This document shows positions 1,821 to 21,036 of a stretch of DNA of 64,000 bases, in pieces (position 1 is the stretch's first letter; each line of letters begins with the position of its first letter). The stretch is taken from assembly GCA_025201805.1 (NCBI GenBank), contig MU619383.1, positions 3,861 through 67,860 of the forward strand. Direction: 5' to 3'. This DNA is from Parasitella parasitica NRRL 2501. Its lineage: Eukaryota > Fungi > Mucoromycota. The notes below the pieces were generated by a model. It searched no databases and was not told where the DNA came from. It worked only from the letters and a program-made list of their open reading frames with translations. Both the position numbers and the translations under genes were made by a program.

Positions 1821-3545
1821 GTGGAGTTCAAGAGAGTAGTGCGTATGAGAGTCGTCCAGAGCGCCGCGGTCAGCACGGGTCGTTCAGAGGGGTATTTTCA
1901 AGCGGCAGACGCAACCAAGGTGCTATCAAGCGTGCGGATAGCGGTGGCGTTGGCAAACGCTACCATTGCGACCAGCATGGAGCTAATGATTCTCATAACT
2001 CGAAAGACTGTTAGTTCCTGAAGTTCAAGCGGGCACGAGCAGAAGGCAAGTGTGTCAAGTGTGGAAAGCCTTACGAAAGAGGACATGCTGAGATTTGTGG
2101 GCAACGCCGTCCTCCGGGTGTAGGTCTCTCGCCGACGGTATTGAACCAAGAGGTGTTTTCCACAAGTGTAGCACCGGCGGCAGCAAAGGAGTCGTCCGAG
2201 TCCAGCAAACTGGAAGATGCTGAGAGCATGGCGGTCGATCAAGACCATTTGCTTAGTGAGTTGGCATTTCAATGTAAGTTGCCTAATGTGAAAGCGGTAA
2301 AGACTGAAACTAATTTCTTTGCGTTGTTGACCCCGTTGTTGATTTGTGTAGAATCCACCAAGTGTATCAAAGTCATTTGCAAAGTGGATACCGGGTTGCA
2401 GATTAGTTGTATCAGTTTGAGTTTTTTAATAGATGTGCTTAAAATTAAAAAAGTGAAGAAAGTGGAATGTTACCTAAAGTTTTTATCTAAGTCTATGAAG
2501 CGAGTGGCAATGACATTTCTGTTGAAATTCAAATATGCGAATGGAATTGTATTTGAGCATGCGTTAGAAGTTGTACAGTTTGAACAAGGTCTAGACTTTG
2601 AAGTTTTGTTGGGAGTAGATGTGTTGCCCAAAATGAATATCGTCGGTTTGACGGGTGTGGCGTTTCGCATTGACAGTGAGCATCAGCACTCGGATGCCAC
2701 GGAGCATGATGAGAGAAGAATGTTTGAGAATATCAATTTTGATTTTGAAGGCAAACATCTAGAAGCTGATAACTCACCTGCCGGAACTTTGGCAGAGCGT
2801 AAAGAGTTTGAGGAGTATATTTGAGAGTCTTTGAAGCGCAATAAGGCCATTCATATTGAGTCGTGTTGTCCATTGCCAGAAGCGGTTGTGAGATTACCTA
2901 CCAATGAAGGAGCGACTGCGCATCGTCATCCTTATCCTATAGCAGAAGCATTGAAGCCTGTGGTGGCAAAGTAAATTCAAAAGTGGTTGGTGTTTTAATA
3001 TACGAAATATAGATATACAATTAAAACTGGATATATTTATTTATATATAAAAAATAAGATGATTCTTCTCTACACAACATTTGCCTAGACTATTTATACT
3101 TTTCGAGTGCTGACATCGGTTGCATGCTTGTGGAATCGAGGCCTAATAAACTTGCACCAGATAGAACCAATTACTAGCCATGTGCTGCTAGTACAAGTAA
3201 TCGTAAACCAGTTATTACCAGAAGGAGACAGGAAGGATAGTGGTCTTGAGAAAGAGTATAATCGCCTTGTGGTATAAAGGATTTCTAATGAGTGTAACCA
3301 TGGTATAATACTTTTGCATAATTGTGAGAATACCCAAGTTGGATCTCAGGCACAACATCAACTCAACAACCCACCTCGCTTAGCCTTTACATCCTAAACA
3401 GTTGGATACCAAGACTATTGGGAGATCGAGAATCAACTCGTCCTTTAATAGTCCATTGTTGGTAGTACCAAAGCGTGACAAACTGGGTAACGTGGTCGAT
3501 CATTGCGTGTGTTTGGATGTGCGTTTGCTGAACAGTATCTTGCCA
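1821..3545 (+). mobile_element. Degenerate Ty3/Gypsy retrotransposon gag-pol relic
   Basis: One frame with in-frame stops carries Gag zinc knuckles (CDQHGANDSHNSKDC, CVKCGKPYERGHAEIC), an aspartic protease (VDTGLQISCIS...LLGVDVL) and the RT N-terminus (PYPIAEALKPVVAK*IQKWL). After an insertion it resumes with the RT motif SFNSPLLVVPKRD...VCLDVRLLN at ~3430-3545. Confidence 0.88.
2991..3420 (-). mobile_element. LTR-like insertion interrupting the Gypsy RT
   Basis: Non-coding block between two RT fragments. Minus strand contains TATAAATAG and ends ...TAAAACA. Right boundary approximate. Confidence 0.5.
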
Positions 3546-3747
3546 CCCCCTTATAACTTTCCTACCTACAGTACATGGTCCGATACAGAATTCCGAGGCT
3601 GCTTGACAAAGACACTTAGCAAACATATCCTCCATACCTATTATAATGTTTCGGGATATTAATCCATAAAAATTTGGGATGTATGCAAAATTTGCAATGG
3701 TAACATATTTCTGAGCTTGAATTTACCACTGCGAATATAGGTCTTAA

Positions 3748-8183: not shown

Positions 8184-8651
8184 CTATAGTAGCGTTAATT
8201 TGACAGAGCCTTTGATTTTTGCTTTCAGTTTGATATCAGCGTCTAAATTCAAATCAAGTCTCAGCCGCAAAGCAGAATTGCCACCAGCATTAGGGTTTGA
8301 AGCAAGCTCTGGCTTTTTCATAGATGCTGCTGCTTTTTTTAATGTTTCTGCCTGTTGTTTTGCTAAATCCTGTTGCGCACTTGATGCTATGGCAGCTTTC
8401 TTCTTTTTTATCGTTTTTGTTTTATCTTTGTCATCAACTGTATCCAACTTTTTACTCTTTTTCTTGCTTTTTTTTACTGAAGAATCAGAGTTGTTGCTTT
8501 CAGCGATTACTTTTTTCTTCTTCTTTTTCTGCTTTTCTTCTTTGCCTGCTGTTTCGGTTGTCTCTGTTTTATTTACAGCTGAGCTCTTCTTTTTTGGTAA
8601 TAGTGTGGATTTTGATAAGGGAAGCGTGCCTTTATTTTTTAATGTCTCCAT
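8184..8651 (-). CDS. Cluster gene A: 155-aa Lys-rich disordered protein with C-terminal LRLDLNL motif
   Basis: Intronless ORF from the ATG at 8651 (METLKNKG). Ends ALRLRLDLNLDADIKLKAKIKGSVKLTLL*, a motif shared with three neighbours. Confidence 0.88.
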   Translation of the reverse strand: METLKNKGTLPLSKSTLLPKKKSSAVNKTETTETAGKEEKQKKKKKKVIAESNNSDSSVKKSKKKSKKLDTVDDKDKTKTIKKKKAAIASSAQQDLAKQQAETLKKAAASMKKPELASNPNAGGNSALRLRLDLNLDADIKLKAKIKGSVKLTLL

Positions 8652-9049
8652 GATCAACAATGTAAAGAACAAAGAAAAGACTTAATCGTTTGTATTGTTC
8701 AGTCAGAAGCTAAGCAGAAATAAAGAAAAGTGATGACATTTTTGTCGTCATGTCAACCTGAAACCAGGCACCTGCATTCATGCGGCGATCATCAGCCTCG
8801 CACGATTGGTCCAATTAAACTTACGAGATAATCCAAGAAGAAGCAATGATGGCATCGTTCCCAACTTGGTGCTCTGAAATTAGTATAGTAACTCATTTTT
8901 CCATGATCCTATATCATCATTACGTCTGTTTACTCTCAGTCTTTTCTTTTTTTCAATTCAAGTGATATAATTTTAAAGCGATTACACGAAAGAAAACTGG
9001 CCCTTCTTCTTTCTCTTGGAAACATTAATTATCGAAATAATAAATCAAC

Positions 9050-9604
9050 ATGTCACCTACAACTACTCCCACAAAGCCTAAAACAGAAAACAAAACAAAG
9101 ACAGATGCTGCCAAGAATAAGACTCCTGAAGAAACGAAGACACAAAATGATAAAAAAGACACTAAAACTTCACAAAACCAGGCTCCTTCTAAAGCTGTAG
9201 AATCCAGTGATGAAGATGATTCTGATGAAGACAATGACTCTGCTGATGATGCCTCTAGTGATGAAGAGACTGATTCTGACGAAGAGACTGATTCTGACGA
9301 AGAGACTGATTCTGATGAAGAGTCCGATTCTGAGGAAGATACTGCTTCTGAGGAGGAGGAATCCTCTGATGAAGAGGAATTGACACCAAAGCAACTGGCC
9401 AGACTCAAAAAGAAAAATGGTTTGGTGAAAGGTGTTACTGATACTGCTGGTCAAGTAGGCGGGGCAGTTGGTGGAGCAGTGAACAACGGCCGAAACAGTG
9501 GTAGTGATCATCCTCTTAGTCTTCGTCTTGATCTCAATTTAGATGTTGAAATCGAACTCAAAGCTCGGGTTCACGGTGATGTTACTTTGGCCCTGCTACG
9601 TTAA
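9050..9604 (+). CDS. Cluster gene B: 184-aa acidic disordered protein with C-terminal LRLDLNL motif
   Basis: Intronless ORF with SDEETD repeats. Ends PLSLRLDLNLDVEIELKARVHGDVTLALLR*. Confidence 0.92.
   Translation: MSPTTTPTKPKTENKTKTDAAKNKTPEETKTQNDKKDTKTSQNQAPSKAVESSDEDDSDEDNDSADDASSDEETDSDEETDSDEETDSDEESDSEEDTASEEEESSDEEELTPKQLARLKKKNGLVKGVTDTAGQVGGAVGGAVNNGRNSGSDHPLSLRLDLNLDVEIELKARVHGDVTLALLR
9257..9379 (+). repeat. 18-bp coding tandem repeat (SDEETD x6-7)
   Basis: TCTGAyGAAGAGACTGAT units in frame in gene B, degenerating towards the 3' end. Confidence 0.9.
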
Positions 9605-9841
9605 TCTGTTACTTGTTTGTCAATCTCTATATATTTATAAAACATCTACATTTTATTATTATTTACTATTTTTTCCTTAAATAAATTGAATTTTATAACT
9701 CTACACATCAGATTCTTTTTAGAAATTAGGGGTAAATTTTTTAGATCTAAGATAATTCATAAAAATGAAACAGGACAAATCATTCAGATTATTACAATTC
9801 AAAGATATTTATTATATAATATTAAAGATAACTGACGGCAT

Positions 9842-10250
9842 TTATGCCAAAAGGGCAAGAGTAACATCACCTACACAAAAAGAGTTTTAGAAAATAACTA
9901 ACAATACGCATAAAATATTTCTTACCATGGACTCTTGCCTTGAGAGTAATTTCAACTTCCAAGTTGAGATCAAGACGCAGACTCAGGGGCTGTTGTCCAC
10001 CACCACTACCTTGTTGGCCTTGTTGCCCACCGCCACCAATAGCGCCTTCGCCCAGGCCTGATAATGTATCTAACGGATCATTCTTGATTAAACCAAGACC
10101 TTTGGATTTGGATGATTTTTTCTTCTTGGGCTTCCTTGTCTTTTCCTTCTTTTGCGATGATTTTTTTGATTTCACAGGAGCCTCATCCTCAGACCCGTTA
10201 GTTTCTTTGATCTTTCCCTCTTGCTTGTCCACTTCTTTAACTGAGGCCAT
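9842..10250 (-). CDS. Cluster gene C: 117-aa Lys/Gly/Gln-rich protein with C-terminal LRLDLNL motif (2 exons: 10250-9926, 9870-9842)
   Basis: Removing a 55-nt GTAAG...TAG intron (9925-9871) gives ...PLSLRLDLNLEVEITLKARVHGDVTLALLA*, nearly identical to gene B's tail. Confidence 0.9.
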
Positions 10251-10551
10251 TTTATTTTTTGATATATCGTTTTATTGGTAAAAAGAAGAAAAGAATACAT
10301 ATTAATTTTTATTTAGTGGGTTTATAAGATTCTTTATGATTGACATGACAACAGAATGACCAAATTAAATGACTCCATTCGATATTTTTACCCGTGAATT
10401 AAGGTCAATTTGGACACTAACTCTTTTTATAAAAAGTTTCCATATTACATCACCAAGTGATATGTAACTGTAACCTTTGTATTTATTACGAATTTTCTTT
10501 TCGTTTTTTCTATTTTCTTTTTTCTTTATATTAATTGCCTACATTTATAAC

Positions 10552-10821
10552 ATGTCTGAACAAGAGCAACAGCAGCAAAACCAAGTAGCCATCAAAGATA
10601 AAAAACGTAAGAAATCTTTACCGAAAAACAAGACCCGTCAAGAATCCATGCTGCAGCAAAGAAAAGCATTGGCAGCACAGCAACAGCAGCAACAGCAAGC
10701 AGCACAAAGCAGCGGTAGAAATAGCAGCATGCCCAAGGTGCGTCTTGATCTCAACCTGGAGGCAGAGCTCTATTTGAAAGCAAAAGCCAAAGGCGATGTC
10801 ACCTTGACATTGCTCTCCTAA
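10552..10821 (+). CDS. Cluster gene D: 89-aa Gln/Lys-rich protein with C-terminal LRLDLNL-type motif
   Basis: ATG at 10552 (MSEQEQQQQ). Ends PKVRLDLNLEAELYLKAKAKGDVTLTLLS*. Confidence 0.88.
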   Translation: MSEQEQQQQNQVAIKDKKRKKSLPKNKTRQESMLQQRKALAAQQQQQQQAAQSSGRNSSMPKVRLDLNLEAELYLKAKAKGDVTLTLLS

Positions 10822-11057
10822 GCCATTGCCTCTCAAACGTACATCCTCTTTGAACTAATCAATATGTTGTATACACATGTACATAAATAAATAATTATCC
10901 AAATCTATCCTTACCCAAACAAAAATCCTCTGTTCCTTTCTTAGCCATTTCAGGCGATAAATGATGCAGGATTATCTCTTTTTTTTTACACAGCTTTTTA
11001 AGTTATTACGGTTTATTATTCATTTAAAAAAGTTTCATGCACATAAAAATACATATT

Positions 11058-11771
11058 TTAGTTTCGAGGAATATGGATACTGAAGGTGATTCCGGTCTTC
11101 GTTGCTTCAACTTTGACGACTATATCATCCTTGTCTCCGCTTCCAATACTGATTTTTCCCGCATCATCGCCATTATGAGCAGTAGAATCTTCATTTTTAC
11201 AACCAGTGGAGGGCTTCTCTTCTTGGCCTTGCTCGTCATCTTCTAATGGAGTAGAGTCAAAGTTACCGTAACTATGCAGCATGTCACCAAGAGGAAGCTC
11301 GAAAGAATGGTGGGTTCCCTTATCATCATCCTTCCTGTCATATTTAGTCTTGACATCATTGTACGTATCTTGGACAGTGTCTCGGATAGTTTGTTTACTG
11401 ACTTGCTCTCCTTGCTCCTTGGCCTCATCTTCTAACATAGACAATCTTTTCATCAGCATGCGATTATATTCTGAAATAGCATTCATCAAAGTCATAGCAT
11501 CTGTATTGCCTGCAAATAGGCCCGTATCATCATCGCTGTCATCATCCAATTCAGTTTGAGCTTCTTGCGCAATGTCTTTTACAGAGTTGGAAACGTCTGG
11601 CTGGACGGCGTCATTGTTTTTTTCCTCAGCAGCATCATCCTTAGAGATCTTGGTCTTCTTTGATTTTGCGGCAGGTATAACAGACTCTCCTAAACCTCGA
11701 GGGTGTGCCTTTTTCGATTTTTTGTTGGCAGATGAGGATTTTTTATTCTTTTTTTCAACGGTGGAAGGCAT
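11058..11771 (-). CDS. Cluster gene E: 237-aa charged protein with short central helix and C-terminal beta-rich motif
   Basis: Intronless ORF with a basic N-terminus and acidic body. Ends DDIVVKVEATKTGITFSIHIPRN*. Confidence 0.85.
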   Translation of the reverse strand: MPSTVEKKNKKSSSANKKSKKAHPRGLGESVIPAAKSKKTKISKDDAAEEKNNDAVQPDVSNSVKDIAQEAQTELDDDSDDDTGLFAGNTDAMTLMNAISEYNRMLMKRLSMLEDEAKEQGEQVSKQTIRDTVQDTYNDVKTKYDRKDDDKGTHHSFELPLGDMLHSYGNFDSTPLEDDEQGQEEKPSTGCKNEDSTAHNGDDAGKISIGSGDKDDIVVKVEATKTGITFSIHIPRN

Positions 11772-12060
11772 AATTTATAACTGGATATAACAAAAAGAAG
11801 AAGGGAATATGCGTTTTGTCTCTTTTTTATGTCAAAGAACTATTGCTGACTCGAGATTTACGTTAATATATCGTCATGGAAACTTAGTGTTCTTTTTTCC
11901 GGGAAAAAGTTTGCGATGATTTATGCATGAGATCATACTAATTTAAATGTTGTATATAAAAGAACCCGTCTTTCAGGATTTCTTTTTTCTCTTTCTTCCA
12001 TAACAAATTTAAAAAATTCTCGAATTATTCTTTATTATACCGTATCTAACTAGTAGAGCA

Positions 12061-15052
12061 ATGAAAAACCAGCAAGCGAAACAACAAGAAGCAGCAGCAG
12101 CTGCTGCCCGAGCAGCTGAGGATCAAAAGCAAACTACTCAAGAGCAATCTAACCAAGGCCAAGAAGCACAAAAAGCTCAAAAGTCTCAAAATAACAATCA
12201 AGAACAAACACAGGGTCAACAAGAACAAGGTGATGATCAAACTGATAATAGCAAAGATCAAGATTCTGAGCAAGAACAACAAGAGCAAGCTGTCTCTGAT
12301 GAAGAAGAATCTGATGAAGAAGACGAGTCCGATGAAGATGAAGAAGAAGGTGATGATGATGACCTCGAAGAATTGTATCGCCTCATGGTCGGAAAGAGAG
12401 TCAATAAAAGTGGTCTAGTCGTCGACAAGAAATCAGGCACTGTTCTAGGCAAAATTGTTGAAGGCAAGGTTAAAAGAATGTCAGGCAAGAAGGTCCGTGA
12501 CAATGGTGAAGTCTACAATGACAAGGGAAAGCTCATTGGCCGTGTAGAGCCAATTCAAGAAGACAGCGATGATAGCGATGAAAGTGATGGCTCGGACAAC
12601 GATCAAGAAGAAGTTTTTGCTAACGAAGAGCAAGAAGGTACTGTATTGCAGAGCTGTTTCCCTAATTTAGTAATCTTGCCTAATTCATTCCCAATCTGTA
12701 GATGTCGCTGACACCATCAAGGATAATAAGGTTGCCCCTGAAAATGATGTCAAAGCTGCAGATGACGAAAATGACAGTAACTCCAATGATAAGGCTGAAA
12801 CTGCACAGGATACTGTTAAAGACTTGGAGAGCGGCGCTGAAGACAAAGCTAATGATATGCAAGATCCCAATGTTACGGAAAGTGATATTGAAGACGAGGT
12901 GAATGATGCCAATGACGTTAGCAAAAACATAGCAAGCGATGCCAAAGATACTTCTGATGATACACAAGAACGAGGAAGCAACCAATATGATGAAAGCAGT
13001 GTTGAAGATATTCAAAGTGGAGATAATAAAGATGATGGAGAAGAAGATAATGATGAAGAAGTAGAAGAAGAAAAACCTTTCAATCCTTATGACCTAGTTG
13101 ATGAAAACTCTCCTGAGGTTCGTAAATCTGGCAAGGTCGTTGACATGGAAGACAATGTCATTGGCACTGTTAATAAGAGCATGGCACCTAAGTTAGATGG
13201 CTTCAAGGTCGACAAAGACGGCAATGTTATCAACCATGAAGGCCATATTGTCGCCAAGGCTGACCTATACCAACCTCCTGCTGAACAAGAAGAGGAAAAG
13301 CCGTTCAATCCCAACGAAAATGTTAATGAAGACTCGCCGGAAGTTCGTAAGTCTGGCAAGATTGTAGACATGGAAGATAACATCGTTGGTGCTATTGATA
13401 AAGAGCAAGCTCCTAAATTTGTTGGTTTCAAAGTTGATCCTCAAGGAAATGTTATCGATAATGAAGGCCATATTGTTTCCAAAGCTGATCTCTACACAAT
13501 TGAAGAAGAAGAGGATAAAGAAGAAAAGCCCTTTAACCCCAACGAAATGGTCAACGCTGATTCTCCCGAGGTTCGCAAGTCTGGAAAGGTTCTTGACATG
13601 GATGATAATCTCGTCGGGTATGTTGACAAGCGCGTCGCTGCTAAACTTGCAGGCATGAAGGTCGACGAAGACGGTAATGTGGTCAATAGCGATGGCCATA
13701 TTGTTGGAAAAGCTGATATGATCAAACCTGAAGCTGAGGAAGAAGAGCCCAAGGAAGAAGAAAAGAAGCCTTTTAATCCCAATGAAAATGTTAATGAGGA
13801 CTCTCCCGAAGTGAAAAAGTCTGGCAAGATCCTTGACATGGATGATGAAGTTGTTGGCCATATTGACAAAAAACTTGCTGCTAAATTTATTGGCTTCAAG
13901 GTGGATCCTCAGGGCAATGTTATTGATAACGATGGCCATATCGTTGCTACTGCCGAAATGATTCAAGTGGAAGAGGAGCAGAAGCCATTCAATCCAAATG
14001 AGGCCGTTGATGAAAATTCTCCCGAGGTCAAGCGATCTGGCAAGGTAGTTGACATGGATGATAACATTGTTGGCTCTGTTGACAAGCATCTTGCCCCCAA
14101 GCTGGCTGGCTTCAAGGTTGATGACAATGGCAATGTTATTGACAATGAGGGCCACATTGTTGCCAGAGCTGAAATGATTCCTCACGAAGAAGAACTAGAC
14201 CCCAACAAGCCATTCAATCCTAATACCATGGTCGATGAACATTCTCCTCGTGTGAGAAAGTCTGGCAAGGTGGTTGACGAAGATGACAATATCGTCGGTG
14301 AAGTTGATAAAAGTTCTGCACACAAATTGGCTGGCTTCCCGGTGGATGACGATGGTAACATCATTGACAATGAAGGTCATACAGTTGGTAAAGCCAAGAT
14401 GTACGACAAGAAGACTGAAGAGCAGCTCAAAGAAGAAGCTGAAGAAGAAGAATACCGCAAAATTGCTGATCAAATGTCGCAATCCATTCAAATCTCCTTG
14501 GACAAGATCAAACCTGTTTTGAAGAACATTACCGACTTGATCGACGAAGAAGAAGCCAAGCCTCAAGAGGAACGTGATGAACAAAAGTTGGTTGATACAG
14601 TCAAGCCATTGATTGAGCAAGGTTCTGCTATTCTGGAGGAATGTAATGGTGCCATTCGTGGTCTTGATCCCTCTGGAAGGATTGCTAAACAGGCTCAGGC
14701 CAAGACCTCAGCAAGAAAGGCTTCTCCTGAAGAATATCATTTGGCTGACCTTTTGGCTCAGCTGTCTGGCGATGTTAGCACCGCTATTGACAGGGCAAAG
14801 AAGAAGATACGAAGCATGCCTCATGCCAAGAAGGAATTGAGTCCCTTGTGGAATATCTTGCAAAGCCCTCTGCTTCAAATCCTCTCAGCTGTTGGTCTTT
14901 TGTTGACTGGTGTATTGGGTCTTGTTGGCAATATCTTGAACGGCCTCGGTCTTGGTTCCATCATCAATAGCTTGTTGGGCGGTATTGGCCTCAACAAGAT
15001 TCTCGAAGGTTTCGGCTTAGGTGATGCTCTAAAGTTGGGCAGAAAGAAATAA
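12061..15052 (+). CDS. Cluster gene F: 975-aa repeat protein, DUF3659-like repeats plus DUF6987-like helical C-terminus (2 exons: 12061-12637, 12702-15052)
   Basis: A 64-nt GT...TAG intron with a CTAAT branch point joins two ORF-track ORFs in frame. One divergent and six tandem G-x-V-x-D-x-x-G repeats, then a helical domain (DEQKLVDTVKPLIEQG...IRGLDPSGRIA...PEEYHLADLL...MPHAKKELSPLW) and a Gly/Leu hydrophobic tail. Family names are from recall. Confidence 0.9.
13075..14400 (+). repeat. Six tandem ~72-80-aa coding repeats in gene F
   Basis: KPFNP...SPEVRKSGKVVDMxDNxVGxVDK..AxKLxGFKVD..GNVIDNEGHIVxKA units start near 13075, 13298, 13526, 13766, 13982 and 14207. Confidence 0.95.
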
Positions 15053-15388: not shown

Positions 15389-18300
15389 ATGCTTCGATCA
15401 AAATCATTTGTAAAACGTACTCGCAAGGGTAATGTTGTCAAGGTTGTCAAAGAGCATTATTTGAGAGACGACATTCCATGTTCATCAGAAATCTGCAAAG
15501 TTTGCAGCAAGACTTCCGTACCAATCCTCTCGAACACACCTAAAGGAACTAGCAAATTCAAGCCTCATTACCTTATCCCTGATACCAACGTCTTTATCAG
15601 TCAGGTATGTAAAACAAGTCCATGCTTCAAATAACACAATGAAAAAGACGACTCACCCACTCGTAAATTAGCTCGACATCATGGAGCATCCTGCAATCAA
15701 AGATGTTATCGTTTTGCAGACTGTTAGAGAGGAAATCCGTCACTTGAGCCTGCCCGTGTACAACAGATTGAACACTATCTTGGCTGACAAAACCAAGCGT
15801 TTTTACATGTTTGCCAACGAGCATCAGCGGTAAAGTACCAGACTGAAAATTGCTGTATTGCGATCTTTGTCTTCTAATTTTTAAATAGAGATACATTTAT
15901 CGAGAAACTAAAGGGAGAGACACCTAACGATAGAAACGATCGAGGTAGGTATCCAGATTCCACTAATTTCTAGGAATGTTGCATTGACTTGTTTTCAATT
16001 ATTAGCTATTCGAGTAGCCACAAAGTGGTTTATGGATCACTTGAAAGCCAATTCTTCGGGCGAGGATGTCGATGTGATCATGTTGAGTGATGATCGTGGA
16101 AACAGAGACAAAGCTAAGGCTACTGGAATCAAAACTTGTGGAGGTAAAAAAAAATCGATCATCAATTTTTTGATGGATTCTGATTTAAAATTTGACTCTC
16201 ATATAGTTACCGAGTATGTTGACAGTATCAAGGATACGCCTGAATTATTGGATATGGTTTCTGCACCAAAGGCAGCTGCTGGCGAGAAAGTTGTATACGA
16301 AGAGGTATGGCTACATTTTACTGCATAGTCTCAAACTAACCGATTTACTCTGTATACATAGCACCTGTCACCAGCACAGATCCAGAATGGCATCAAAAAG
16401 GGATCACTCATCCAAGCACCCTTTAATGTCAGTGTTCACAATGTCCAAGAGGTTAATATTCACTTTATATGTTTCTAAAAAGGAAGTCAACGGTGTTAAT
16501 AAATGTAAATAGGCCACTGTCGTTGGAGAAGTTGAGGGCGAGGTCAAGACCATCTTTATTTTAGGTCGCAAACACTTCAACCGCTGTATCCAGGGCGATA
16601 TTGTTGCTGTAGAGCTTTTACCAAAGAGTGAATGGAAGCGGGGAGCTTCCGTTGCCATTGAAGAAGAGGATGACGATGAGGAAAAGATGTTTGGTGAAGA
16701 GGAAGTAATTGTTGATAAAATGACAGAAAATGACACCCCTGTTGAACCTACTGGCAAGGTAGTTGGTATCATTCGTAAAAAATGGAGACCGTAAGTTTAG
16801 ATTTTGCAAGAAGGTATAAATGGGATAGTCAAAAATTGACGTTTTTTACATAGCTACTGCGGCTTCATCGTGAAAAAGACTGTACCCAAGAATACCGCAA
16901 GTGGGCCCGTAAATGTCATTTTTCGTGCTATGGATAGACGCATTCCTCCCATCAAGATCAAGACATCACAAGCACATACTTTGGTAGGCAATCGTATTGT
17001 GGTATCAATTGATAGCTGGCCTACCACTTCAAGGTACTGCGGGATATCAGACAATACATGTAATTTTTCTTAACGTCTGGCTCCATTATTCACATAGTTT
17101 CCCTATGGGCCATTTTGTCAAAACATTGGGTTCTTCTGGCGATAGAGAAACTGAGACTGAAGTTTTACTGCTAGAGCATGATGTTCCCTATCAAGAATTC
17201 TCTCAGCGTGTGCTTGAGGATCTTCCTGTGGAAGGAGACCAATGGGTTGTGCTCGACAAGCATTTGACACAAGAAAATAGACGAGATTTTAGAGATTTGG
17301 ATATTTGTAGCATTGATCCACCTGGATGTACTGATATTGACGATGCTCTTCATGCTCGTGTTCTTCCCAACGGTAATTGGGAAGTGGGTGTCCGTAAGTT
17401 GACTACATCGAATACTGATGTCTTTTAGTTGAATACTGAGCTTTATTTTGTAGATATTGCAGATGTTACCTATTTTGTTAAACACGGTATGCCAATGGAT
17501 GTAGAGGCTGCTTCGCGTGGCACATCTGTCTATTTAGTCGATAAACGTCTCGACATGTTGCCCTCACTTCTGGGTACCAGTAAGTATACGAATTATTTGG
17601 CTAGAAATCATCAATTTTTGATTGTTTTCCTTTTTTTTTTTTTTTTTTTTTTCAATGTAGATTTGTGCTCGTTGAGATCCAACGTCGAACGTTTAGCCTT
17701 CTCCTGTGTTTGGGAAATGAACGAAAATGCCGAGATTGTCAGCGTCGACTTTACAAAGAGCGTTATTCGATCCAAACACTCCTTCACTTATGAGGAAGCA
17801 CAAACTCGTATTGACGATGAGCGTATGCAGGACTCCATTACCAAGGGCATTCGTGTATTGAACAAATTTGCCAAGATTCTTCGACAAAAACGTATGGAAA
17901 ATGGTGCCTTGACGTTATCATCGCCTGAAGTTCGTTTCAATTTGGAGAATGATTCACAAGATCCTGTAGATGTTGAAATGAAGGAGCTGAAAGAGACCAA
18001 CGCACTGGTGGAAGAGTTCATGTTGCTGGCAAATATCTCTGTAGCCAAAAAGATATATTCCAAATTCCCTAGCTCTGCTATGCTTCGAAAGCATCCTGCC
18101 CCTCCTACTAACAATTTTGATTCTTTACGTCAAATCCTCATGGAAAAGGGGTTTATTTTAGAAACGGAAACTTCAAAAGCTTTAGCTGATTCATTAGATA
18201 AGGCTGTTGTAAGTTCATTGTCACTGTTATCTGAATGAATGAATAGCTTGATTTTACTCATTTCATTTACATTCTAGATTCCTAAGGACCCTTATTTCAA

Positions 18301-19036
18301 CAAACTGGTCCGTATCATGACAACCCGTTGTATGATGCAGGCTCAATATTTTTGCTCAGGCACGGAGATCGAGTCAGAATTCCAGCATTATGGTTTGGCT
18401 AGCCCCATTTACACACATTTCACATCCCCTATCCGTCGTTATGCAGGTACGTCAAACTGTCATGTCTTTAAGCGCCTGTATTCAATCTAGTTTTTAGACG
18501 TTATTGTCCACCGTCTCTTACAAGCCTGCATCAAACCCGACCTTGAATACGGTGCAGAGTTGATCGATACACTTAGGATGAAGGAATTATGCGATAATCT
18601 CAATTTCCGCAACAGAATGGCTCAGCAGGCAAGCCGCAGTTCCGTCGAACTGTTTACCAGTCTTTACTTTAGAAACAAGACTGAGGTAGAAGAAGGCCGT
18701 ATCCTTCGCGTTCTGAAGAATGGTATTATTGTGCTTGTACCTAAATATGGCATCGAAACAATTGTATATACATCCTTATCAGCCGATGGGCCATCACCGT
18801 TCACCTATGACGAGGAGGCTAAATCGCTTGTTGCTGAAGACATTGTACTAAAGACATTTGATTCTGTTAAGGTTGAGATTACTGTAGAAGGCGACGCAGA
18901 TGGCATGCGTCAAAAGATGAATATGAGATTGGTAGAGCCATTTGTTGAGGGCGTTAGTGTTGTACCCTCATCAACAACAAAAAGACCCAACACGGGTGAT
19001 AATACAGAAAATACTGCTAAAAAGTCGAAAAAATAA
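15389..19036 (+). CDS. DIS3: Exosome catalytic subunit Dis3/Rrp44 (about 13 exons)
   Basis: [14 protein letters not shown]...[10 protein letters not shown] start, PIN domain DTNV, RNB motifs [15 protein letters not shown] and HYGLA...[11 protein letters not shown]. About 12 GT-AG introns. Confidence 0.97.
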
Positions 19037-19345: not shown

Positions 19346-20329
19346 TTAAATGAACTGAGGCATATAATCCGCAATAAAAGTTGCTGCTAATGGTGAAGAC
19401 ACAGGTTGATTGTAATACTGGCCTGAAAGAACAACAGGGTCATTCATATATAAACTGTCTAGCGAAATAGGTGACCCAGCTACTGTAGAAGCAGAGCAAG
19501 ATGCTGTTAATGGTGGTGTTTGCTGTAAATATGGGTTCATCATTTCCAAGCTAGTGGCATCATAAGAGAAATTCCTCTTGAATGGCTGCTGCATAGGTGA
19601 CACATTACTGCTACTGTTATCCTTTGATAGTAAAGAGGGCGACCAAGATGGCGATAAATAACTTGCTTGTGGTTGATTAAGTGCTGCCATGGTGTTAATG
19701 TGTTGATAGTGATGCATGATGGGACATGATTTGCGTCTCATTTCGTAGGAAGAGGATGCAGCAGCAACAGCAGCAGCCGTGGTTGCAACAGTACGAACAT
19801 TTTCATTCAATTGCCATGCTGACCAGTCTGGCTCTTCTTGAACAAAATTGTTTGTAAAGAATTGCGAGAATAGAATGGAAGATTGATTTAAATCACTGCT
19901 GTTCAAAGGCGTGTCGATTGCATCCATGTCTTTGTAATGTTCTTTTTGCTCTGCTAGCAACAGAGTTGGCTCTTGCTCCACTTCAATTTTTGAGCTGGGT
20001 TTTCTTTTAGATTGCTTTGCTTTTGCTCTTCGGTTTTGGAACCAAATCTGTACACCACGAGGTGTCATTTCAAGTTTTTGGGCCAAAATGCGGCGGATAG
20101 CAGCACTTGGCTTTGGGTTCTCAGTGTATGACTTCTCAAGCACTTTCAGTTGCGCGCGGGATGTTCTGCGTCGATGTTTTATTTCGAAAGGATTATAAAA
20201 TGTTGGGCGAAAATCACCGTGTGGATATTGATGAAATGTTTCCAAGAGATAGTTGTCATCGGATTTAGGAGTTTGTGTAGGCGATACTGCAAACGATTGT
20301 TCAAAAGGCTGCAATGAATCCAATGTCAT
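19346..20329 (-). CDS. Homeodomain transcription factor (327 aa)
   Basis: HRRRTSRAQLKVLEKSYTENPKPSAAIRRILAQKLEMTPRGVQIWFQNRRAK homeodomain. ATG at 20329. Confidence 0.93.
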   Translation of the reverse strand: MTLDSLQPFEQSFAVSPTQTPKSDDNYLLETFHQYPHGDFRPTFYNPFEIKHRRRTSRAQLKVLEKSYTENPKPSAAIRRILAQKLEMTPRGVQIWFQNRRAKAKQSKRKPSSKIEVEQEPTLLLAEQKEHYKDMDAIDTPLNSSDLNQSSILFSQFFTNNFVQEEPDWSAWQLNENVRTVATTAAAVAAASSSYEMRRKSCPIMHHYQHINTMAALNQPQASYLSPSWSPSLLSKDNSSSNVSPMQQPFKRNFSYDATSLEMMNPYLQQTPPLTASCSASTVAGSPISLDSLYMNDPVVLSGQYYNQPVSSPLAATFIADYMPQFI

Positions 20330-21036
20330 ATTTATATGTGTATTTATATGAAGAAATAAAAAAAAAAAAAGAAGAAGAAAAGAAATCAATGATCCTAGGG
20401 AAGAGGGGATCTCTTTTTTATATATAAACAGAGAAATTCCAACGATAAACTACATGGATAAATGTCAAGTTACTATATAGACAATATGTATAGGTTTTTA
20501 TCCGAATTCAGGATAGCGTCTTTTGTCCCCTTGAAGGAGTTGCTGATGATTCCTTGACTTCACTTGTACCTGGATGCAAAATGTCATTTAACTTTCCAAA
20601 AAATAAAAAACTAGCATGGCCCTAAATGTAAAGTTATATTAGAAAATGATGGTATAACATGTATACATGTTTATCTCTTTTTTCTCTCTCTTCCCCTCTA
20701 TCTCATTCTTCCGTTTCTGTATCTCTGTCTCGCTCTAATTCTATCGCCCTTTCACTGTTGGTCTAGTTAACATCATTGGTATGCAATGCGTCCTAGTTTT
20801 TTTGTCTGATGATATGCGCGCCAGTTGACGATCGAACGGGCAATCCTTCTCATAAGCTAAATATACAAATTTGCTCATTGAATGCCATAATTTAAATCAA
20901 AAAGGAAAATTTGAAAAAAGGAGTGATTCATACTGCTGTCGCAAAATGTGCACAGTTGATGTGTATTTCAATACAGACTAGTACAGTAGCATCTTGCTCA
21001 AAGGAGGGTTTTTATTTATTTATTGACATGTACATT

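Follow-up and report, generated by a model that had tools for sequence, protein, structure and literature searches.

In this work, we have analysed a cluster of six genes, here called A to F, in the genome of the fungus Parasitella parasitica NRRL 2501. The genes span positions 8184-15052 of the window, that is, of the whole stretch of 64,000 nucleotides under study (contig MU619383.1, positions 3,861 to 67,860), with no other gene in between, and they form three head-to-head pairs: A(-) B(+), C(-) D(+) and E(-) F(+). We propose, with a probability of about 0.4, that this ancient, co-transcribed cluster is a kit for a coat on a hydrophobic intracellular surface, most likely that of lipid droplets. 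The observations on which the proposal is built are the genes themselves, their joint transcription in one sample, their linkage over two phyla and the beta amphipathy of a terminal motif, together with the bundle and hairpin folds predicted for two of the proteins. The parts of the locus are the following:

8184-8648, minus strand: gene A, 154 amino acids, basic (isoelectric point 10.2), disordered, with a divergent terminal copy of a 28-residue alternating motif; transcribed.
8649-9049: upstream region shared by A and B, with TCGTCATG at 8745-8752 and a TTACGT site at 8920, suggestive only.
9050-9604, plus strand: gene B, 184 amino acids, acidic (isoelectric point 4.2), disordered, with Asp/Glu/Ser repeats and the canonical motif at its end; transcribed.
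9842-10250, minus strand: gene C, 117 amino acids, basic, disordered, with the motif at its end; transcribed.
10251-10551: upstream region shared by C and D, with TTGTCATG at 10344-10351 (minus strand).
10552-10821, plus strand: gene D, 89 amino acids, basic, Gln-rich, with a divergent motif copy at its end.
11058-11771, minus strand: gene E, 237 amino acids, acidic, disordered, with a conserved central helix and a terminal amphipathic beta-hairpin.
11772-12060: upstream region shared by E and F, with TCGTCATG at 11871-11878 and TTACGT at 11858.
12061-15052, plus strand: gene F, 975 amino acids, with a Gln-rich, acidic disordered head, seven DUF3659 repeats, a DUF6987 helical bundle and a Gly/Leu tail.

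The contiguity of the six genes, reported in an initial annotation made from the sequence alone, is borne out by the gene calls, by exact database proteins and by RNA coverage. Exon-by-exon comparison matched gene C to database protein P0008 (117 amino acids) and gene F to P0028 (975 amino acids), both exactly and both of P. parasitica; gene E is identical to database protein P0147. Genes C and F each contain a GT..AG intron, of 55 nucleotides at 9871-9925 (within the motif of C) and of 64 nucleotides at 12638-12701 (in F), and these spliced genes were searched per exon or via their database proteins, not as joined models. All six genes are covered by one RNA run, a single sample of unknown condition kept as Logan contigs, which skips the intron of F and whose depth is zero in the bins 8768-8934, 10271-10437 and 11941-12107 between genes. 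Neither an enzyme motif nor a signal peptide had been recognised in the proteins, and this holds: the Pfam search of the six returned no enzyme family, and none of them has a hydrophobic N-terminus (judged by eye only). Throughout the 32.8 Mb genome, the motif (four matches), DUF3659 (seven), DUF6987 (one) and the E tail (one) occur at this locus only.

Genes A to D code for polar proteins without cysteine and with at most one aromatic residue, of which A, C and D are basic and B is acidic. The earlier description of them as alike only in a terminal motif proved accurate, since 17-26 of its 28 residues are common to the four and BLAST finds no similarity among them outside it. Pfam holds no family for A-D or for the motif. 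A motif profile matches 872 clusters at 50% identity, whose named carriers belong to the Mucoromycota, the Pezizomycotina, the Agaricales and one chytrid; the motif was not confirmed in bacterial and archaeal genomes (GTDB, one pattern only), its profile has no relative among PDB sequences, and Atlas searches gave nothing, or unnamed ascomycete clusters scoring under the reliable level. Among the best matches, alternate positions are aliphatic in ~99% of sequences across the 28 residues, one Gly excepted, the opposite face is charged or polar, and ~70% of the proteins end at the motif or within a residue of it. The hydropathy moment of 123 distinct motifs is 3.04 at 180 degrees versus 0.15 at 100 degrees, which is the periodicity of a beta-strand, and the motif is near-invariant across the span from Mucoromycota to Pezizomycotina. 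A lone strand of this kind should need partners, and this is our main reason for expecting an assembly; in-register parallel stacking would place like charges together. In the Myotisia cluster, a 114-residue Gln- and Gly-rich protein (record L007, 6877-7221, minus strand) has repeated amphipathic-looking segments, and segments like these stand before the motif in many motif proteins.

Gene E ends in a hairpin predicted with a confidence score (predicted local distance difference test, pLDDT) of 83-93. The hairpin had been described as different from the A-D motif, and our results agree: homology between the two was rejected (hhalign probability 0.3%), and the motif profile matches neither E nor F. 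A fold search with the hairpin gave only matches with Z<3, and a likeness to Hsp20 or HATPase tails was unsupported by Pfam. In Umbelopsis, Metarhizium, Glarea and several metagenome contigs, the E hairpin ends a protein with one DUF3659 repeat that adjoins F or stands near it, which makes E, on this sequence evidence, the form that a second DUF3659-type gene takes in Mucorales.

The product of gene F is the only member of the cluster with catalogued domains. Above the Pfam curated cut-offs, exon 1 matches DUF3659 (PF12396) with 70.9 bits, and exon 2 matches DUF3659 with 244.9 bits in six stretches and DUF6987 (PF22485) with 288.9 bits. The fold was predicted with AlphaFold2 from the part of P0028 within exon 2 and 63 homologues, giving for DUF6987 a helical bundle with pLDDT of about 85-98. 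The repeat protein with a hydrophobic tail of the initial annotation is thus upheld as to the repeats and only in part as to the tail, whose first half packs into the bundle in the model; the last ~30 Gly/Leu residues are of low confidence, and basic residues close the tail. The best structural match to the model is the Pleurotus laccase small subunit (8paq_B, Z 13.3, root-mean-square deviation 2.9, 145 residues aligned), followed by AfMp4p (Z 11.0-11.1), Mp1p ligand-binding domains (Z 9.9-10.3) and g7941 (Z 9.7). Mp1p domains, which are related to HsbA, bind fatty acids in a fold of five helices (PMC13537970). Given borderline Z scores and no support from sequence, including a PDB sequence search with F that gave no Mp1p match, we treat the resemblance of the modelled bundle to these fatty-acid-binding domains as a lead.

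DUF6987 is about 65% identical between Mucorales and Pezizomycotina, and its tree (unrooted, and built without basidiomycetes) sets the Mucoromycota apart from the Pezizomycotina with full support. Identity and tree are in line with old vertical descent, and recent horizontal transfer into Mucorales is not indicated because the tree splits the phyla. Within the same tree, the DUF6987 of Myotisia (Eurotiomycetes) groups with Leotiomycetes (96/98), a placement that may come from paralogy, sparse sampling or transfer within ascomycetes. DUF6987 is partly duplicated in tandem in the F protein of Umbelopsis sp. PMI_123, and F of U. nana scores as though the domain were present more than once (L005, 10001-11902; P0027, P0075). 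Since bacterial proteins with RHS repeats or RcpC domains contain DUF3659-like repeats (Atlas clusters), the repeat may predate the fungal cluster. The table of one fungal biofilm proteome, apparently that of Cryptococcus neoformans, includes a DUF6987 protein, J9VK61 (PMC12345193); F-type genes thus probably reach basidiomycete yeasts.

The cluster recurs in distant fungi. All six genes are found in the same order in Mucor lusitanicus, beside the gene Dis3; the orthologue of gene A is present in the record of this species (L002), where it is not called. Adjacency to Dis3 is shared by Parasitella and M. lusitanicus and was not seen in the other lineages examined. Neighbouring locus tags agree with linkage in Rhizopus, Blakeslea, Gilbertella, Benjaminiella, Thamnidium and Helicostylum, and Umbelopsis (L005) has genes of the B, E, D and F types among different neighbours. 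Metarhizium joins F, E, a beta-trefoil gene (PF28325) and a motif gene; Myotisia, two motif genes, the trefoil gene and F; Aspergillus mulundensis, F and two motif genes; in Glarea, E and F stand head to head, and cluster parts are also linked in Pezizales-like and Dothideomycete-like contigs. Linkage therefore recurs in Mucor, in Umbelopsis and in four or five classes of Pezizomycotina. Among distinct long metagenome loci retrieved with the motif alone, 12 of 15 carry DUF6987, the E hairpin or the trefoil nearby; several of these loci are related and of hypocrealean type, so the 12 are not independent events. The Pezizales-like contigs combine a short F, consisting of DUF6987 only, with two motif genes and the trefoil gene, which suggests, at the level of sequence, that DUF6987 and the motif may be the core of the cluster. 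These data support the earlier view of a non-enzymatic gene cluster: its members stand together in distant fungi, and a single sample contains transcripts of all of them. Of the expectation that the genes would go together across fungi, linkage stood from Mucor to Pezizomycotina and obligatory co-occurrence did not, given the Agaricales, Zychaea and one Aspergillus udagawae copy: co-occurrence of the parts is common, not obligatory.

The beta-trefoil gene is often part of the Pezizomycotina clusters (for instance L072 13586-14278, L003 8610-9327 and L007 5928-6689). It was not found in the Parasitella genome with a weak four-sequence profile, which does not amount to absence. In L072, the N-terminal part of the trefoil protein includes a hydrophobic segment, which could serve as a second anchor to lipid or membrane. 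Umbelopsis has a CdiI_5 immunity-like gene after F (L005 12180-12654), and Myotisia has a TNT-domain gene near F (L007 14159-14976); neither recurs in other loci.

What is the role of these proteins in the cell? The initial annotation knew of no function assigned to DUF3659, a statement now overtaken by LdrD. This DUF3659 protein of Aspergillus oryzae is reported to sit on lipid droplets, and its gene belongs to a set whose loss upsets the number and size of the droplets, in most cases towards more and smaller ones (bioRxiv 10.1101/2022.11.24.517872). The same report describes a conserved C-terminal region of LdrD with predicted amphipathic helices, and N-truncated orthologues. F answers to this description as far as it goes, having both DUF3659 and a conserved amphipathic C-terminal region.

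We propose that F would bind the droplet through its DUF6987 bundle and Gly/Leu tail, in the manner of exchangeable lipid-coat proteins. Since the A-D strands and the E hairpin cannot, as we infer, fold alone, they would line up next to one another, probably antiparallel and with different members intermixed, to form a sheet that turns its aliphatic face towards lipid or another sheet. The acidic, basic and Gln-rich disordered arms would then extend into the cytosol and form a brush governing the spacing, growth and stability of the droplets, the DUF3659 repeats might space or dock the subunits, and the coat would matter most in stressed or resting cells. In more general terms, and with a chance that we place somewhat short of even, the operon-like cluster may encode a heteromeric beta-sheet assembly that is new to the literature and is distributed among filamentous fungi from Mucoromycota to Pezizomycotina. 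In it, several disordered subunits would each contribute a single long amphipathic strand to a sheet, shell or tube, and a lipid-binding repeat scaffold would organise the whole.

Several points weigh against a droplet coat. F is absent within 10 kb of the motif genes in Pleurotus, in Mycena and in Zychaea (which has three tandem motif genes), as well as in two black-yeast-like contigs and one A. udagawae copy. The top VIA matches of the DUF6987 model (Z 9.7-13.3) are borderline, close to what helical bundles commonly reach; no Foldseek match had E<=0.001, and HsbA (PF12296) matched neither F nor, among the 25 families listed, its 63 homologues. LdrD was identified in a tagged-protein screen, and one LdrD paralogue is not on droplets (bioRxiv 10.1101/2022.11.24.517872); that LdrD is identical or orthologous to F we infer from its description. 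The single RNA sample, kept as contigs, speaks for transcription and joint presence, not for co-regulation. A charge-complementary antiparallel register of the motif, appealing by eye, was dropped because it did not outdo shuffles (p 0.9).

A doubtful but serious alternative is that the motif proteins polymerise by themselves into beta-sheet fibrils, tubes or a gel that protects or stiffens the stressed or dormant cytoplasm, F merely tethering or nucleating the polymer at a membrane or droplet. With a strictly alternating strand of 28 residues carried by a disordered arm poor in aromatics, the motif proteins are designed as self-assembling beta peptides are, and motif genes persist singly or as tandem triplets without F. 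In A. fumigatus, the gene AFUA_8G04920, annotated as a 'LEA domain protein', rose 13-fold in one comparison of conidiation temperatures (PMC5423626) and appears beside the dehydrins in a list of down-regulated stress genes (PMC11619415), as might suit a protective polymer; this gene is, however, tied to F by its annotation name and by an Atlas cluster of the same name that is 100% DUF3659, not by sequence. Indirect expression data of this kind are the sole hints of the role in spores or desiccation that the initial annotation considered plausible. Polymerisation has also to face the unfavourable charges of parallel in-register stacking, and no antiparallel register stands out.

Slightly less likely still, in our view, is a co-regulated stress or dormancy regulon of hydrophilin-like proteins that act separately, the motif serving only for small dimers or for targeting. 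In its favour is the layout in three head-to-head pairs, each with the word TYGTCATG in the shared upstream region and all three conserved in M. lusitanicus; TTACGT is conserved, likewise also in M. lusitanicus, in the A/B and E/F regions. Both words resemble bZIP ATF/CREB sites. Over the window, the promoter 8-mer shows no enrichment (7 occurrences versus 5.6 expected), and 20% of random AT-rich triples have some such word in common, so only conservation between species lends weight to the element. Gene content and order vary by lineage and solo copies occur, as separate action would allow. Against this, the same few parts stay linked over two phyla while the flanking genes change entirely, the motif keeps its near-invariance over that span, and the presence of the F repeat in the E-type genes of most lineages suggests that the two have a surface for interaction in common.

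A closed shell or tube of beta-sheet around a hydrophobic lumen, built in the manner of a gas vesicle wall with F as external scaffold, is improbable: paralogous small subunits with a purely aliphatic strand face and a repeat scaffold do recall the GvpA/J/M and GvpC layout, but no sequence link to the Gvp families was found in Pfam or PDB, the motif lacks flanking helices, and we know of no hollow-shell organelle of this kind in these fungi. Most improbable is an amyloid-type signalling or cell-death module in which folding of the motif triggers the bundle and tail of F to damage a membrane. It is true that the genes of amyloid signalling in fungi form clusters, in which a terminal beta motif goes with a helical membrane effector, and that repeats like DUF3659 are present in bacterial RHS-repeat proteins. 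Yet no NLR or other sensor is among the called genes of any fetched locus, F has no copy of the motif, which templating would need, the top fold matches include no HeLo, MLKL, gasdermin or colicin, and DUF6987 is single-copy and slow-evolving, unlike conflict genes; the programmed membrane-acting assembly once suggested for this locus found nothing in favour of membrane damage.

Around the cluster, the Dis3/Rrp44 exosome nuclease gene (15389-19036, plus strand) lies directly downstream of F, and a homeobox-like transcription factor frame (19346-20389, minus strand) just past it. On the other side, ~800 N occupy the window at about 320-1120, and 2141-3662 holds fragments like a decayed long-terminal-repeat retroelement protease and reverse transcriptase, with no long intact gene between them and gene A. 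A few kb past its gene A, M. lusitanicus has a reverse transcriptase frame like that of a non-LTR retrotransposon (L002 16541-18655, minus strand).

Most fungal gene clusters with deep conservation serve metabolism. A cluster like the present one, which codes for structural proteins, stays linked in two phyla and has a near-invariant motif outside Pfam, points to a structure of the cell that has been overlooked. Searches of Pfam, of PDB and of open-access literature did not turn up the motif family, the E hairpin or the cluster; the literature searched contained no description of the motif or of the cluster and, for DUF3659, a single paper. If true, a heteromeric assembly would be a new kind of eukaryotic organelle coat, and a droplet coat would bear on droplet sizing in oleaginous Mucoromycota and on the protection of lipid reserves in spores; the motif itself could be a natural self-assembling peptide. 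Because the cluster is short enough to delete and its subunits are defined, its function can be tested directly in Mucor lusitanicus, Aspergillus or Trichoderma. The novelty lies in the system as a whole; the domains of F are already catalogued, and the job proposed for the cluster resembles that of known lipid coats.

Among known systems, LdrD is the nearest to F: both have DUF3659 and a conserved amphipathic C-terminal region, and the N-truncated orthologues of LdrD are paralleled by the short F of the Pezizales-like contigs. LdrD was studied as a single gene, and the accessible part of the report mentions no cluster, partners or mechanism. The HsbA (PF12296), Mp1p and AfMp4p proteins and the Pleurotus laccase small subunit give the best structural matches of the DUF6987 model, over ~140 residues and at 6-14% identity. 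Unlike the secreted HsbA proteins (PMC13537970), F lacks a signal peptide, its start being polar and Gln/Ala-rich (judged by eye), and it has a long acidic repeat region and a Gly/Leu tail. LEA proteins and the fungal dehydrin-like DprA/B/C are hydrophilic, low-complexity and aromatic-poor, as are the cluster proteins, and F homologues are automatically annotated as 'LEA domain protein'; the cluster proteins have no Pfam match to LEA or dehydrin families, and are defined instead by a conserved terminal beta strand or a folded domain. The NLR-amyloid-effector clusters of the HET-S/NWD2 type likewise combine clustered genes, a short terminal beta motif and a helical protein with a hydrophobic segment, but the motif described here is much more conserved, and charged and aliphatic rather than Asn/Gln/Gly-rich. 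Perilipins, oleosins and apolipoproteins, to which no sequence match of the cluster proteins was found, are coats of lipid surfaces in which a hydrophobic anchor with hydrophilic arms controls droplet size, and apolipoprotein B uses amphipathic beta-sheets on lipid. These coats are single gene families, whereas the coat proposed here would be made of one anchor and several separate beta-tailed subunits.

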